A DNA stretch of 63,752 bases, the filler included, from Hausera hauseri (lineage: Eukaryota), in the NCBI GenBank assembly GCA_046269625.1. It is 11 parts of 11 records of this genome, joined end to end, with 100 filler letters (N's around TTAATTAATTAA, not from the genome) between each part and the next. Parts side by side here need not be neighbours in the genome. Positions count along the whole stretch, not along the records: positions 4,919 to 11,008 come from JBJURY010142205.1; positions 11,109 to 16,344 come from JBJURY010302055.1; 9 more parts are not named here. One strand, 5' to 3'. The notes under the pieces are model-generated. The model did not search any database, had not been told where the DNA came from, and saw only the letters and a list, made by a program, of their open reading frames with translations. Below, piece after piece: positions 10,001 through 16,344 of this stretch (position 1 is its first letter; the number at the start of each line of letters is the position of its first letter). The translations under genes were made by a program, and so were the position numbers.

Positions 10001-12902
10001 TACAGCCCCGATTGTCAAATCACGTCCTTTATTATTTCAACAACCAACGAAATAAAAAAAACAACAACGTTCAGAACAAAATAACTCACTCATTATATTT
10101 TTCAAGGTTTCAATATTCAATTAATAATTTCAACAAAATAATGTGTCTATTTTTTGTCAGAGTTTCATTTATTTATACTCTGTCCAATGTTTGGCGACTG
10201 TGCGGCGGCGCCACTGTCAAAACTTCCGCCGCACAGGCCTTGTCAATTTGTTAATTAATAACTTTATTGCTGGCTATGAACAACGGAAAATCGATGTTAT
10301 TGAGTTTTTTTATAGTTTTTTTGCTTTGAAAATAAATCAACCTCTGTTTGAGAAGTATTGTTCTTGTTGATCACTTTATGTTTTAACGATGGAATTTCGT
10401 GACATCCCGCAAATGAATATGAAACTACAGGAACAAAGATAAACTACATCTTCAAGTCAGAAAGATCGGACACTTTACACATAAAAGTTAGAGACGGAAG
10501 TGGTCAAAGATTTTGCTACTGCAGATTGATTAATTTTAATTTTAATATTTTAGCTTAATTTTTATATATATAGAGTTATTAATTCCATGGACCAATAAAT
10601 TCCATTTTTTCTAACTGAGATTTTAATTATTATGTTCAAATTTTACAAAAATCAAATTAACTAGTGACAATACTGGCTTATTTGCATGCAGTGCAGTAAA
10701 AATGCATGATTAACAACATACCTAAATTTTTCAAAATTCACCATTAAAATGGACCAAAGTTAATCACATGAGAGAAAAGTTTATTTTACCAACAATTTCT
10801 GAAAACTAATTGCATTAAAAGCTGGTGTTTCGAAATATTTATCCAATTTAGTCATGTCATTTTACCAAAAAAATTTAATAAAATACAAACAATATGAATA
10901 GTTAACTTTCTATTTCATTTAACTTCGTTAGTTCAACTGTGCTACAATTTACAAAGTAATTCAACGAAAAACGACTTAAAAATCACAATTGGAAAATTGA
11001 CTTTTTATNNNNNNNNNNNNNNNNNNNNNNNNNNNNNNNNNNNNNNNNNNNNTTAATTAATTAANNNNNNNNNNNNNNNNNNNNNNNNNNNNNNNNNNNN
11101 NNNNNNNNAGGGCAACAATGGGATCTCGACAGGTGAGACTGCAGGCAGTGCATTAGCCCCATTCCCGCCTGCTGTGGTCTGTACGTGTCTGTTGACCACA
11201 CATGACGCGGCTAATGAACATTGTTTTCTTTGCCCAAAGGAGAGAGATGGGCCTATCGATGTTTCGCTTTTGAAAAATGTTTTTTCTCCACCGCAGGGGT
11301 TGAACTTTGTATCCGTCTAGAGAGATCTTCATTGCTCAGGACTTATAAATTGCTGTAAGAATCTCTTGATCGTTAGTCTGCGTGCCGTTTGCGCCGACGT
11401 GCTCGGCGAACTCTCTCACATGCATGTTTGACTCGAGTTCTCCTGTAATATATTCTGAATCGTCATAAATTGGGTGACATGCTTCCTAGGCATGACTGGT
11501 TTTGTCATCTTTCGGAGAACAGCGGACTGAAAATGTGGCCGTGCTGCTGGGTTGAAAGAGGGAAGCTATTAAGTTTAATAGGCTCAGACTAATAACGCCG
11601 TGTGTTGCACGCTCCGAACAGGTTCTGTGTTTGCTGTGTCCACACATCTTTCAAAAGAACAAAATTGTTTAGTCCAAACACCAATTTATTAAATTCAGAG
11701 GTAGTTTCCTTACCATCTTTCTTCCATATAAAACGTAAATATTTTTTGTCTGCTGAATCTACTGCAATTTGGAGAAACATTTTATGTATGTCGCAAATTA
11801 AAACGTAATTATTGCGACGCATTCGGATCAAGATGTCGATTACGTCGAGTTTTAACTTTGGACCGATTTCTAAGAAGTCATTTAGACACTTTCCCTTAAT
11901 TTTTGTAACTGCATCAAACATTGCGACATTTTGTGCTGCCACGGTCAAACTTAACAACAGGAAAATGTGGTAGCAGCCATTTTGTTTCTCTTTCCTCTCC
12001 TTTCGATACTTCTCTTATGTATGATTTTTCTTCGTATTCTTTAAGGACTTTGTTATATTCGTCTTTTCCCCTAATATCTTTATCTTTACTAGCAGCTCTA
12101 ATCTTCTCCTTGCCATCCATGATGTGTCAAACCCACTAACATCTGGATACCTTTCTTCCTTTCAGGGTAGTTTAACACAAAATCTATCTTTTTCATATTT
12201 TATTCCTTTTGTTACTTTTCCCAACAATTCAATCTCCAGGTTATTTAGCTCCGTCTTTTCCTGTAACCCCTGTTCTGCTTCCAATAATCTGTTCCAGTCC
12301 TCTTGCAATTCATCGGTTCTTTTCCAAAATGTTTTAACGAAATTTGTCCTCACCTTTTTCCTTTCATCTCCGATCAAACCAACGCACGTTCATCCAAGTG
12401 GGGTTAATCTGGCTATAGGCTCGTTTATTTTCCCTGCTATTTCCTTTATGGACCTATGCAAATGCATATAGTTCGCACCGATTATTCCATCAACTGATTT
12501 TGGTGATTTTTTAGTGTCGAACTTTATTTCTCTCAAGTGTGGCCATTTGCTTTTTTCGACCTCCCAATTCACGGCCATCATTTTTCCAGTAGGACCAACG
12601 CCTCAAATGGAATGTCAACCTTCCCGTTCTTACTTCGTAACCTCATTTTACCCTTTTTATTTTTGATTTTGTTGTCTCCCCACCTACTACCATAACGGAT
12701 ACACTTTCCTGCTTATTAACTAATCTTAGCTGTTGTGCAACGAAACGTTTCACAAAACACTCCGTGCTTGCGTCGTCTAACAACATACACATTTTATTTT
12801 TCGCTTTCCATTTTCCAACCATACGTCCACCGTACGCAATGCTACTTTATTTCCTGTCGTTTTCTCTTCTGAACGTTGAATTACATATGTGTTAACCCGT
12901 GA

Positions 12903-13232
12903 TTACGTTTCATCTCCCACGCCTTCCTCTTTGTTTACTCTTTCTTCTGTATGGTATGTATAGAACGCTTTTTCTTGTTTTTTAGAATTATCCTTTTTTA
13001 GCGGTGATTCATGAACAAAATGACAATTTTCCCCGTATTTACAATTTCCGTTCAGATAATATTTGCATATTCGTGTTTCAATTTTCCTATCTTTCTTGTG
13101 TAAAAATCTACAATTATTCCCGAATTTACAAGTCCCCTCCTTTTCAAATTCCCAGCAAAGAATTTTCTCGGTCTTATCTGCTGTTTTAACGTTGTTACCC
13201 CCTCTGCATCTTATCTTGAACTCGGGTCTCAT
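12903..13232 (-). CDS. Gag C-terminal segment with two CCCH zinc fingers
   Basis: LCWEFEKEGTCKFGNNCRFLH and ICKYYLNGNCKYGENCHFVH (C-x7/8-C-x5-C-x3-H). The segment is in frame with the 13233-13433 ORF across a single stop and lies just upstream of the protease. Confidence 0.88.
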   Translation of the reverse strand: MRPEFKIRCRGGNNVKTADKTEKILCWEFEKEGTCKFGNNCRFLHKKDRKIETRICKYYLNGNCKYGENCHFVHESPLKKDNSKKQEKAFYTYHTEERVNKEEGVGDET

Positions 13233-13368
13233 CTATATAAAAACTCTTCCGTGTTTCTTTATCATGTCTCCTACTTCCGAACGTTTCATTGTTCTTTCCG
13301 GTAGAGGGGAAATGATTCTCAACTCTGGTACGATTGTTAGTTGTTGTTTTATCAACTTTGTGTTCATT

Positions 13369-14772
13369 TTAAAACCTTGGCGGCGATCTAGCCTCGAATG
13401 TATTAAAGACGTTGATACCTCTAATTCTTTCAATGGTGCTCCTTCGTATGCTCGCCTCCGACTCCACCCAAATTTTCAATTCTTCAACTGTCCGATTTAA
13501 CCTCTTTTCGGAGGCATATCGCTCCCATAACAGTACTATGGACTCTGGGAGCTTCTCTACAAGGCTTTGGTATAAGAACCCTCCGCCTAATTTTTCCTTC
13601 CTTTTCAAATTTTGCAATCGTACTGTTATGCCATCCAACAATGCAATGAATCGGTCTAGGCCTACAATGTCTTCTTGCCTTATTGGTTTAAAACGTATTA
13701 CCTCAGTCATAAAGGCGGCATAACACCGTTGCTCTCCTCCGTAGTAGGAGTGAAGCTTTCCCATCGCGGCTTTATAACCTTCTTCTGATAAATCAAAGTT
13801 CTCAATCAGCCTTTTCGGTTCTCCATATAGGCATCTTTCTAACTGCAGCTGTTTGCATATGGTAGACATTGACGTTTTGTTTACACACGTATCGCATGTT
13901 CTTTTCCATCGATCATATTCAACGACTGCTCCACCAAATTGTGGCAGTTCCAACCTTTGTAACTTTGGCAGATTTAATTTTTCTTTCATTTCGCTGTCTA
14001 TTGCCTTTTTTGTAGAGTTGGCGACCAATTTATTATCCCGTAGACTGCGTTCATAAATTATCGTGTTGATTGTTTCATTTTGTTGATCTAACTTTTCTAT
14101 CTCATTTTCCAGTAATGCTATATTCTCTTTCTTTTTCAGTTTTTTAGCTGAGGTAGTCAAAAAACACAACTTCTCTTGGACATTTGCGAAAACCCTTTCG
14201 TAACTTTCATAAAATACTTCGTAATCGTGTTCATTCAAATTTACATCCATTAATCTCCTTCTAATCGAAGCTAGTTCATTTATAGGCCTTCGCCGTTCTG
14301 CAATGCATTCTTTAAGTGCCTCTGCAGTCAACTCGCTACCTCCTTTCAGTCGGAACATCACTTGAATTGTTGAACCACGTTTTAAATTTTCCACTTCTTC
14401 GTTGGTCCGTAACGGCTTCCCGCAGTGTAACATCATGAACTCATTTTTGATCTTCAATTTTTCCTTTATAAGTTCGATCCGATTGAGATGTGACAGGGTG
14501 TCACTTACATCAGCTATGAAGTATCGGTCATCGTAGTGTATAATTATCTGTTTTTCCATTTTTTCGACTTGCACAGCTGGAATTTTGTATGTCTTCTCTC
14601 CCTTTATCCTTCCTATTTCGTACTGCTCTAATTTGACCTTTTTCTTCTGATTCCTTGACTCTCCTTTTCCTTTATTTTCTTCTAGCGACTGTCCTTTCAC
14701 ATCCTCCGAGTATGTCCGATCTCTTTTTTTCCCACTTTCTGATTTCTGTTTCCCAATACAAATTCTTTTCAA
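13369..14772 (-). CDS. gag: BEL/Pao Gag ORF: basic linker, ubiquitin-like domain (about 14338-14560), coiled coil, DUF1759-like capsid domain
   Basis: 467-aa open frame containing SDTL...HCGKPL...NLKRGSTIQVMFRLKGG, followed by BEL Gag motifs. Confidence 0.88.
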   Translation of the reverse strand: MKRICIGKQKSESGKKRDRTYSEDVKGQSLEENKGKGESRNQKKKVKLEQYEIGRIKGEKTYKIPAVQVEKMEKQIIIHYDDRYFIADVSDTLSHLNRIELIKEKLKIKNEFMMLHCGKPLRTNEEVENLKRGSTIQVMFRLKGGSELTAEALKECIAERRRPINELASIRRRLMDVNLNEHDYEVFYESYERVFANVQEKLCFLTTSAKKLKKKENIALLENEIEKLDQQNETINTIIYERSLRDNKLVANSTKKAIDSEMKEKLNLPKLQRLELPQFGGAVVEYDRWKRTCDTCVNKTSMSTICKQLQLERCLYGEPKRLIENFDLSEEGYKAAMGKLHSYYGGEQRCYAAFMTEVIRFKPIRQEDIVGLDRFIALLDGITVRLQNLKRKEKLGGGFLYQSLVEKLPESIVLLWERYASEKRLNRTVEELKIWVESEASIRRSTIERIRGINVFNTFEARSPPRF

Positions 14773-15839
14773 TACTTTTATTTCCTTCCTTTAAATTTAT
14801 ATTTTTACGTCTGTTGCTTTCTATGTCACAACTAGACGCTTTTTTCTCTTCAATGTTACCATAATTACCGATCAAGTCTTTAAATTCCTCCAAAGGCGTC
14901 ATCGGTACTTTGCCTTCAAAGTTGTACAATTTGTACTTTCCATTCTCTATTACAACTTTTACAGGCTTGGTACGGACTCCCGCCTCAAACACACTGTGAT
15001 GAAGGAAAAGATGGCCGAAATCAAGAAGAAGGACATACAGACCTTCGAAGACAATCGCATTACGCGGTTTGTGTCTACGGATCACGTTGCAGAGCACCAA
15101 CCGCACTCTGCTACCATAAAATGGAAATTTTAAATGTGTCTGGTATAACGAATTATGCATATTTTTTCTTAAATGGATAACTAGTTTGCATCTACCATTA
15201 CCCCTTAGCACACTTCTCATTATCTCCTTTCTGAGTCCATATGAAATTTCTCCTTGGACATATTTCCCTTCAATCTCGTTTAAATTATTCTTGATCATGA
15301 AGACTTTAGATTTCATAACTATTTCATATCGTGTTTCTTCCCTTATTATTAATTCAAACCCCTTTTTGTTGGTCCCATTACCACACGGAAGATTCATGCG
15401 CCTTTTATATACAGAATTTATGATGTTGTTATGTTTACTTTGAGTTATTGATTTCCATCTTTACAACGTCTAACTCGAGTATCACCCCCGATTCCCAAAT
15501 CCTTATATCTAATATATCCCCATATGAAAAAACATTGAGGTTAAATTTTCAATTATACTCGGCCTTTGTTCTCGCGGTGCCTTTCCGCGGGGGAGTACCT
15601 CCACCTTTGAGTATTAATATCCATACAATCACTCTGATTTTGTCATACAATCCGGTACCACAGCCCCGGCTGACCTCCGGCAAACCAAAAGAACGTAAAC
15701 AAAAACAAATACTATTATTAAAATTATTTCTAACCCTTTCAAGTTTTAATATACAGCGAAAATACTTCTCCCCTTCAATGTCCTCCTCGTCAGCACAGCA
15801 ATTGGTTATTATTCTATATGCGACTACGTTTGAGTCATC

Positions 15840-16344
15840 AGGATGTTCATCGTTTTCTTTGTACGTTTCAGCTTCAGCAATCATTCTCTCGCTTTCACCC
15901 TTTGGTAATCGCCTTCTCTCGTTCACTATCATTATTTCACTCTCCTTATTCCATCCAATTCTACCAAGCAGATCATTATCTTCTATCATGATGCGCTCTC
16001 CTTTGTAAACTTGTTTGTCAATGACATTTCGTCTGGTCAACGTAATTGTGGCCCAATCAATAGTTTCAATGACCAAGTTAAAAGGAGTTACATCAAGAGA
16101 TAGATGATCCCGAACGGCTTTTGATTCATCTCCTATTAAACTTATGATCTGTATTGTTGTACTATACGCAATAGATTCGTCATAATTGATCAGTTTGTTA
16201 AATTCTTTTCCATTAAGGAGATCCAAAACAACATCATAAATGATAGTCTTGTCTAGTTCTGTGTATCTGAGAGATTGTTCAATTAGTGCTAAAGTCGTCC
16301 GAAGATGATCAATGTAAAGTTTCCCTAAACGGACTTCTATGATT
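15840..16344 (-). pseudogene. HSP70: Hsp70-derived segment at the 5' end of the BEL/Pao ORF
   Basis: IIEVRLGKLYIDHLRTTLALIEQSLRYTELDKTIIYDVVL-DLLNGKEFNKLINYDESIAY...GDESKAVRDHLSLDVTPFNLVIET...QVYKGERIMIEDNDLLG...NERRRLPKGESERMIAEAETYKENDE aligns with cytosolic Hsp70 (ITRARFEEL..DLFRGTL.PVEKALRDAKLDK..IHDIVL; FNGKELNKSINPDEAVAY; LLDVTPLSLGIET; QVYEGER.MTKDNNLLG; NDKGRLSKEDIERMV.EAEKYK.EDE). Confidence 0.88.

Follow-up and report, generated by a model that had tools for sequence, protein, structure and literature searches.

A dead BEL/Pao retrotransposon of Hausera hauseri with a ubiquitin-derived domain in its Gag, CCCH fingers, and an Hsp70-like frame upstream

The locus and its BEL/Pao identity

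We describe a broken retrotransposon of the BEL/Pao group from Hausera hauseri (assembly GCA_046269625.1). It lies in a window of 63,752 nucleotides, the whole stretch of DNA under study, which joins parts of 11 records of this genome. The piece that we analysed is positions 11,109-16,344 (record JBJURY010302055.1), and all coordinates are those of the whole window. The features described here cover 11592-16343, and the coding strand is the minus strand. In the order of that strand, they are a frame derived from Hsc70, a second open reading frame (ORF2), a third (ORF3) that encodes the Gag protein, a pair of CCCH zinc fingers, a broken protease, and a truncated reverse transcriptase (RT) (Table 1).

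A preliminary description of this DNA reported nearly open coding sequence, on the same strand, ahead of the DUF1759 domain of Gag, and this holds up. An ORF scan finds three long stop-free frames of 264, 262, and 473 codons upstream of or through DUF1759, which are parted by a single stop (15551-15549) and by frame changes within 15460-15438 and within 14790-14675. The composition of the strand predicts about 0.075-0.08 stops per codon, and the openness of each of these frames is far above chance. Downstream of ORF3 come an ORF of 109 codons and then about eight short open pieces that reach 11592. By Pfam, the first frame contains HSP70, the third contains DUF1759, and the fourth contains two CCCH fingers; the short pieces give weak signals of protease and RT. 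GC skew and A-richness do not vary between about 16300 and 11700, and there is no break in composition where the Hsp70-like frame joins ORF2 or where ORF2 joins ORF3. The composition shifts at about 11600, where the frequency of C goes from 0.14 to 0.26. The flank beyond has a GC content of 0.47 and gave no long ORF, no RNA family match, and no other match.

Table 1. Features of the analysed piece, in window coordinates
Feature	Position	Strand	Basis and remarks
Hsc70/Hsp70-derived open frame	15552..16343	-	264 codons, 5' side cut by the edge of the piece; Pfam, phmmer
Gap without a long ORF, holding the stop of the Hsp70-like frame	15461..15551	-	ORF scan, reading of the sequence
ORF2	14675..15460	-	262 codons, first ATG at 15397; coding-like codon-position composition
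Overlap of ORF2 and ORF3, with frame change	14675..14790	-	Run of seven A at 14730-14724
Lead of ORF3, K/E-rich	14560..14790	-	77 open codons, no ATG
Ubiquitin-derived domain (ORF3 residues 78-151)	14338..14559	-	Alignment, AlphaFold2 model, Foldseek
Long helical hairpin / coiled coil	14014..14325	-	Alignment, AlphaFold2 model
DUF1759 Gag domain, capsid-like, all-helical	13396..13956	-	Pfam core 13956-13531; model; tblastn
Tandem CCCH fingers, in nucleocapsid position	12906..13232	-	Fingers at 13160-13011; Pfam; frame differs from that of ORF3
Aspartic protease region, in four or five pieces	12249..12902	-	Site LLDDAS; tblastn
Start of reverse transcriptase	11620..12248	-	Pfam, tblastn; a stop and two frame changes
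Unrelated flank	11109..11619	.	Base composition differs; no match

The element is recognizable as BEL/Pao from both Gag and pol. ORF3 contains DUF1759 (PF03564) with E 1.5e-11 and 45 bits, against a Pfam cutoff of 25.4, and an exhaustive search gave 1126 relatives of this DUF1759 Gag. The preliminary description counted DUF1759 among the domains that had been captured from a host, which was a mistake: it is the canonical Gag domain of BEL/Pao elements and is present in 151 of the 151 representatives that we scanned. In tblastn, nine full-length BEL/Pao polyproteins (P0087, P0098, P0118, P0054, P0027, P0030, P0034, P0038, and P0070) match the piece at 13965-13400, in Gag, and at 12590-11620, from the end of protease to the middle of RT, with E from 1e-34 to 1e-41. 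P0087 bears Peptidase_A17, RVT_1, and an integrase. Though the region is broken, pol still has the order protease and then RT, with sequence of the BEL/Pao type, so the earlier assignment to this group was correct.

Compared with its closest relatives (P0002 and P0007), the stretch from 13372 to 11592 has about 10 lesions. There are stops at 13371-13369, 12905-12903, 12645-12643, 12392-12390, and 12164-12162 and at least five frame changes. The protease region accounts for three of these stops (12905-12903, 12645-12643, and 12392-12390) and for at least three of the frame changes. (The stops at 12392-12390 and 12164-12162 replace conserved Trp residues of the relatives, in the motifs TPLGW and LPW.) Homology to the full-length polyproteins ends in the middle of RVT_1, near 11620-11630, with unrelated sequence beyond. 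We think that the RNase H/Peptidase_A17 region and the integrase are missing because this copy is cut off, and not as a trait of the family. Similarly, a pair of long terminal repeats (LTRs) is not visible because the 3' half of the copy is missing.

Judged by its sequence, the piece contains the 5' two-thirds of a dead LTR retrotransposon of an animal, of the Belpaoviridae type, on the minus strand and cut off in the middle of RT. Like the known Belpaoviridae (Pao, BEL, Tas, Suzu, and Sinbad), it has a DUF1759 Gag, protease, and RT in this order on one strand, and its Gag falls inside the BEL/Pao tree. It differs in having a ubiquitin-derived domain and a coiled coil before DUF1759 and a CCCH pair instead of CCHC knuckles. 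This copy also has no RNase H, integrase, or LTRs, as these are cut off.

Gag and its relatives

BEL/Pao Gag is regarded as having a simple and stable architecture that consists of DUF1759 and CCHC knuckles. ORF3 has more than this. It is an intact Gag of 473 codons, with a ubiquitin-like domain (Ubl), a coiled coil, and DUF1759, and it ends at the stop at 13371-13369. The Ubl begins at the first ATG of ORF3 and ends in RLKGG, and the next residue is Ser. In a joint alignment, residues 80-151 are in register with ubiquitins (PF00240) of the relatives. The tail reads RLRGG-S in P0004 and P0009, and L148 and G151 are the same in all 8 aligned sequences of the clade that we describe below. By phmmer against single ubiquitin chains, we found E 0.24 only; 19 of the 20 PDB sequence matches listed for the Ubl are ubiquitin, and these 19 are weak.

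The predicted structure points the same way. An AlphaFold2 model of Gag, built with 48 sequences, has a mean predicted local distance difference test (pLDDT) of 88 and comprises a beta-grasp (1-72), a long helical hairpin, and an all-helical DUF1759. The beta-grasp is modelled as strand-strand-helix-strand-helix-strand with pLDDT 73-86. With this model, Foldseek finds dozens of ubiquitin chains with template-modelling (TM) scores of 0.70-0.76 and root-mean-square deviations (rmsd) of 2.5-2.8 A. Going by the model, the Ubl is a real beta-grasp domain that has diverged past the reach of Pfam in this family, while the fold and the tail were kept. The preliminary description was right to name a ubiquitin-like domain here.

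As an aside, the top Foldseek match of the model of the whole Gag is BAG1 of Arabidopsis (4hwi_B, E 2.8e-3), but the fit is poor (TM 0.34, rmsd 15 A). BAG1 has a ubiquitin-like domain and a helical BAG domain that binds Hsp70, which is a curious, if weak, coincidence beside the Hsp70-like frame of this locus.

The CCCH pair is clear from sequence comparison (zf-CCCH, PF00642, E 9.5e-15, 54.5 bits versus a Pfam cutoff of 20.5). The first finger has the spacing C-x8-C-x5-C-x3-H, and after ten residues the second has C-x7-C-x5-C-x3-H. At our locus, a stop and a frame change lie between DUF1759 and the pair. In P0002, the same pair is found between DUF1759 and protease within one intact ORF, so we take it to be the nucleocapsid of this family, and CCCH fingers do belong at the end of Gag, as the preliminary description had it. 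P0007 and P0009, which are in the clade but outside this family, bear CCHC-type knuckles at the same place. The closest solved relative of the pair is fingers 1-2 of CPSF4/CPSF30 (E 8.6e-11), whose spacing differs by no more than two residues; the element has two fingers rather than five and has them as a nucleocapsid. CPSF30 binds the poly(A) signal. The pair probably came from a host, and its likeness to CPSF30 suggests a second capture, one that replaced the CCHC nucleocapsid.

Our relatives are gene calls from metagenomes, for which we have proteins only: 14 representatives from the clade and 137 from outside it. Close relatives are rare. Among 5.8 billion proteins, the sole close match is P0001 (62% identity), and among 1.8 billion representatives there are three close relatives, each of them a singleton cluster. 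The alignment to P0001 begins exactly where the Ubl begins and runs through DUF1759 to its end, with nothing aligned upstream. More distant relatives have recognizable ubiquitins: P0004, P0007, P0009, P0010, and P0026 each have PF00240 (E from 4e-28 to 7e-7), and a coiled coil and DUF1759 come after it. In a tree of DUF1759 only, all 10 rows with ubiquitin, with the Ubl, or from the close family are inside one group of 15 rows, which has a support of 99 by the Shimodaira-Hasegawa-like approximate likelihood ratio test (SH-aLRT). Of the five remaining rows, four are fragments or truncated gene calls that have no N-terminus. The last one, P0128, is complete at its N-terminus and has no ubiquitin; it is on a long branch, and its placement is unsure. 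(In the domain census, P0128 also seemed to match otubain, which we rejected as noise summed over three RT repeats.) We found no ubiquitin in the 137 representatives outside the clade.

As the Gags with ubiquitin form one well-supported clade, a single old capture would fit: the ancestor of the clade would have taken ubiquitin once, from a host ubiquitin mRNA, and the domain would then have diverged. Also, since the Ubl and the CCCH pair recur in relatives, they are traits of a lineage and not an accident of the H. hauseri copy. The coiled coil between the Ubl and DUF1759 is conserved across the clade as well. From these comparisons, we read the Gag of this sublineage as a variable N-terminal extension, a ubiquitin-derived domain, a coiled coil, and DUF1759.

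The extension at our locus is probably ORF2. Its codon-position composition is like that of coding sequence, and its C-terminal third is rich in K, E, and N. P0001 has an extension of similar character, K/E/N-rich and 162 residues long, which cannot be aligned. The lead of ORF3 is open for 77 codons before the first ATG, which has a probability of about 0.003 by chance, and ORF2 and ORF3 overlap by 115 nt that include the run of seven A. We consider it quite probable that ORF2 and ORF3 were formerly one Gag ORF, which was split by a single frame change. A single-sequence AlphaFold2 model of ORF2 was uninformative (pLDDT 35).

Within ORF2 there is a patch that is richer in G+C (14960-15140). 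A frame of 112 codons lies on the opposite strand (14795-15130), and neither strand gave a Pfam match. A likeness of 15140-14960 to histone or ribosomal proteins was seen by eye only and had no support from any tool, so we dropped it.

The state of ORF3 raises another issue. It has no lesions over 1419 nt, versus about 10 in the next 1780 nt; by our own arithmetic, the chance that all ten would miss ORF3 is about 0.003. The contrast may be due to selection on gag after pol was lost. If so, the ORF with the Ubl, the coiled coil, and DUF1759 could be a gag gene domesticated by the host, or it could belong to a gag-only, non-autonomous element that was kept while pol decayed. ORF2 and the Hsp70-like frame are intact too, and the first ATG of ORF3 is right at the Ubl; both points favour this reading. 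Nevertheless, we think that domestication or a gag-only element is improbable. Relatives at 62-64% identity (P0002) keep Gag, the CCCH pair, and protease in one ORF, which is a transposon context, and the 77 open codons ahead of the ATG indicate that the ORF used to be longer. Furthermore, the only close relatives are the three singletons, and there is no series of orthologues that would reveal purifying selection.

Several proteins of the clade also contain pieces of other host-type genes. P0026 has an in-frame piece of HSP90, 8 residues ahead of its ubiquitin; in P0002, a CFAP58 coiled coil stands in the same ORF where RT would be; and P0005 has a piece of CCDC149 after DUF1759, again in the same ORF. 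This makes 3 of 14 proteins in the clade, versus 0 of 137 outside it (hypergeometric probability about 6.5e-4, our own arithmetic). The preliminary description proposed that this lineage accretes fragments of stress mRNAs. An excess of host fragments in the clade is suggestive of accretion, but they are not only from stress genes.

The seven residues that directly precede the ubiquitin of P0026 are CMRVKCG. By eye, they look like the end of an earlier ubiquitin repeat, a hint that polyubiquitin may have been the source.

The Hsp70-like frame and the reading as a whole

The first frame contains an Hsp70-derived block, just as was first described. In a phmmer search against PDB it matches Hsc70 with E 2.4e-23, and residues 4-170 of the block correspond to Hsc70 300-534 (16334-15834). 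Hsp70 (PF00012) scores 33 bits versus a Pfam cutoff of 20.6. Residues 1-299 of Hsp70 would lie past the edge of the piece. Neither the nucleotide-binding nor the substrate-binding domain is complete. Across 170 aligned codons, with about half of the residues identical, there is no intron, no stop, and no small frameshift. There are three in-frame deletions of about 15, 21, and 36 residues, in the nucleotide-binding domain and the beta-sandwich, and about 72 core residues are gone. Since core parts of both domains are deleted, the product could not be a working chaperone. The last 94 codons of the frame had no match in PDB, and their alignment to the Hsp70 on locus L057 scored below the mean of shuffled sequences. 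After its stop, the frame is open for 37 more codons (15548-15438), which overlap the start of ORF2. The frame has the strand and the composition of the element and differs in composition from the 3' flank. This pattern fits a reading frame that long remained translatable and does not fit a neutral pseudogene. In our reading of the sequence, it is a long-translated derivative of a cytosolic Hsp70 whose function is dead.

We also noticed an 18-nt inverted repeat with one mismatch (15416-15433 and 16224-16241) whose arms lie on either side of the Hsp70 block with its tail. The first in-frame deletion has its junction where one arm ends, and the other arm is 20 nt before the first ATG of ORF2. 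Any such 18-nt pair occurred in only 2% of 200 Markov resamples. The repeat may be a scar of recombination or an RNA stem.

Our overall reading is that the locus is a dead BEL/Pao copy with a captured ubiquitin and a CCCH nucleocapsid, and possibly with the Hsp70 fragment aboard. We put the probability of this reading at roughly 60%. A number of observations weigh against it. First, we have only one copy in hand, and it is dead. We searched collections of metagenome, viral, and prokaryote contigs for related DNA loci and found none. (A contig scan with P0004 found plain ubiquitin genes on giant-virus contigs only, which is uninformative here.) Second, the 5' border of the element was not located: a search of the piece for LTRs and a primer-binding site (PBS) gave no long direct repeat, no tandem array, and no tRNA or Rfam match. 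(Reading by eye gave only candidates for the PBS.) Third, the Ubl has no match to PF00240 in Pfam at E<=1. As the aligned relatives pass this threshold, we consider the domain to be derived from ubiquitin rather than to be a ubiquitin. Fourth, ORF2 has no relatives in Pfam (both strands), PDB, the gag set, or the protein databases that we searched. Fifth, because the host pieces in the clade were seen in metagenome gene calls, some of them could be insertions of elements into exons.

The remaining difficulties concern the Hsp70-like frame. Its stop at 15551-15549 is 94 residues past the equivalent of Hsc70 residue 534, which is near the expected end of an Hsp70 of 640-641 amino acids. Also, the frame is out of frame with ORF2, no second copy of the block was found in the databases searched, and P0001 has 162 residues before its Ubl, as its N-terminus was called, and no Hsp70 in them. 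So the block may belong to a separate gene, as its 3' part, although for the position of the stop this is an argument from length only. The neighbour would be a decaying or divergent intronless paralogue of Hsp70, and the element would have inserted beside it or been joined to it by a deletion. In favour of such a neighbour, the frame differs from that of ORF3 as well as that of ORF2. Furthermore, we know that this copy is rearranged elsewhere, as it is cut in the middle of RT and has a foreign flank. We consider a neighbouring gene to be a serious rival, with a probability that falls somewhat short of even.

On the other hand, the Hsp70-like frame matches the element in strand and base composition. 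If the block is a neighbour, the 5' LTR would be either very short and hidden in 15834-15460, or lost. Within the 1.3 kb between the Hsp70 homology and the Ubl, only 91 nt are outside the long ORFs, and a non-coding LTR would scarcely fit there; it would have to hide in open frames, given that the Hsp70-like frame is open for 94 codons past the homology and for 37 more after the stop. A neutral pseudogene as diverged as this should have stops or frameshifts, yet all three deletions are in frame. And P0026, with HSP90 fused before its ubiquitin, makes it less likely that the element is next to a heat-shock gene by chance. That the fragment is instead a host piece carried inside the element seems to us close to an even bet.

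The preliminary description went further and inferred a single polyprotein from Hsp70 to Gag. The sequence as it stands does not support this, with a stop, two frame changes, and 1.3 kb between the Hsp70 homology and the Ubl, no Hsp70 in P0001, and no second copy in the databases searched. We think it unlikely that the Hsp70-like frame was ever in a single reading frame with Gag.

One might also suspect that the assembly is a chimera of reads from an Hsp70 pseudogene, an orphan ORF, and a BEL/Pao element. We have a single copy, and the composition does change abruptly at about 11600. But there is no break in composition at the Hsp70/ORF2 or ORF2/ORF3 joins, and the frames overlap across both of them. 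Also, the order Ubl, DUF1759, CCCH, protease is found again in independent contigs. So we consider a chimera to be very improbable.

Possible host captures, a proposed mechanism, and what it would mean

What might a retrotransposon do with ubiquitin? Host deubiquitinases would be expected to cut after the GG, by analogy with fusions of ubiquitin to ribosomal proteins and with cytopathic pestiviruses. The cut would free a Gag of coiled coil, DUF1759, and CCCH fingers from the N-terminal extension. If this occurs, it would account for several features of the clade: homology among relatives starts exactly at ubiquitin, the part upstream is unrelated among members and free to take in foreign pieces, and the Ubl, strongly diverged as it is, has been conserved best in its tail. 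We think that such a cut is the likely mechanism. In a wider reading, the captured ubiquitin would be a linker that the host cuts and that insulates the Gag core, and the 5' end would be a tolerant zone that gathers fragments of abundant host mRNAs by template switching. We rate this wider reading as doubtful. Alternatively, if the ubiquitin stays uncut, it could have a role in the trafficking or budding of particles.

There are precedents for parts of this picture. Cytopathic pestiviruses (BVDV) have insertions of host ubiquitin that arose by recombination, and cleavage at the GG by ubiquitin hydrolases of the host frees the downstream protein. In both cases, a host ubiquitin coding sequence is found in a replicating RNA-based element. 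In pestiviruses, though, the insertions are recent, are specific to strains of an RNA virus, and lie upstream of NS3, whereas here the domain is old, fixed in a clade, upstream of a capsid domain, and diverged. Similarly, UBA52, RPS27A, and FAU (FUBI) encode an N-terminal ubiquitin or ubiquitin-like domain that ends in GG and is followed by a functional protein. Those are host genes, while in the element an extra and variable N-terminal extension precedes ubiquitin.

As for the other host pieces, acutely transforming retroviruses transduce host genes. Such fragments of host mRNAs are often carried at the expense of pol, and P0002, with CFAP58 instead of RT, is similar. Capture of genes by LTR elements has been described in rice and sorghum (PMC3726574). 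What is different here is that the fragments share a reading frame with Gag or protease and are concentrated in one ubiquitin-bearing clade. The Hsp70 homologue of closteroviruses is another case of Hsp70-derived sequence that is tied to a mobile genetic entity. It is a complete and working ATPase, unlike the block at our locus, which is short by about 72 core residues and whose tie to the element is unproven.

The preliminary description suggested that this architecture was new. Our full-text search of the literature found no BEL/Pao Gag that bears ubiquitin or CCCH fingers, and no Hsp70 in one, although most subscription journals and the Repbase reports were beyond its reach, so this is not proof of novelty. 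In practice, copies such as this one could easily be mistaken for genes for ubiquitin, Hsp70, or zinc-finger proteins when genomes are annotated.

If our reading is true, then a clade with a fixed ubiquitin-derived domain and its cleavage tail would be a new case of a retroelement Gag that is processed by a host protease. In the same clade, the nucleocapsid would have been exchanged for CCCH fingers of a host type. With its excess of host fragments in frame (HSP90, CFAP58, CCDC149, and perhaps Hsp70), the clade would be a natural system for studying how host coding sequence is transduced by LTR retrotransposons. And if fragments are gathered as we propose, with Hsp70 here, Hsp90 in P0026, and others elsewhere, these elements would be an invertebrate counterpart of gene transduction by retroviruses.

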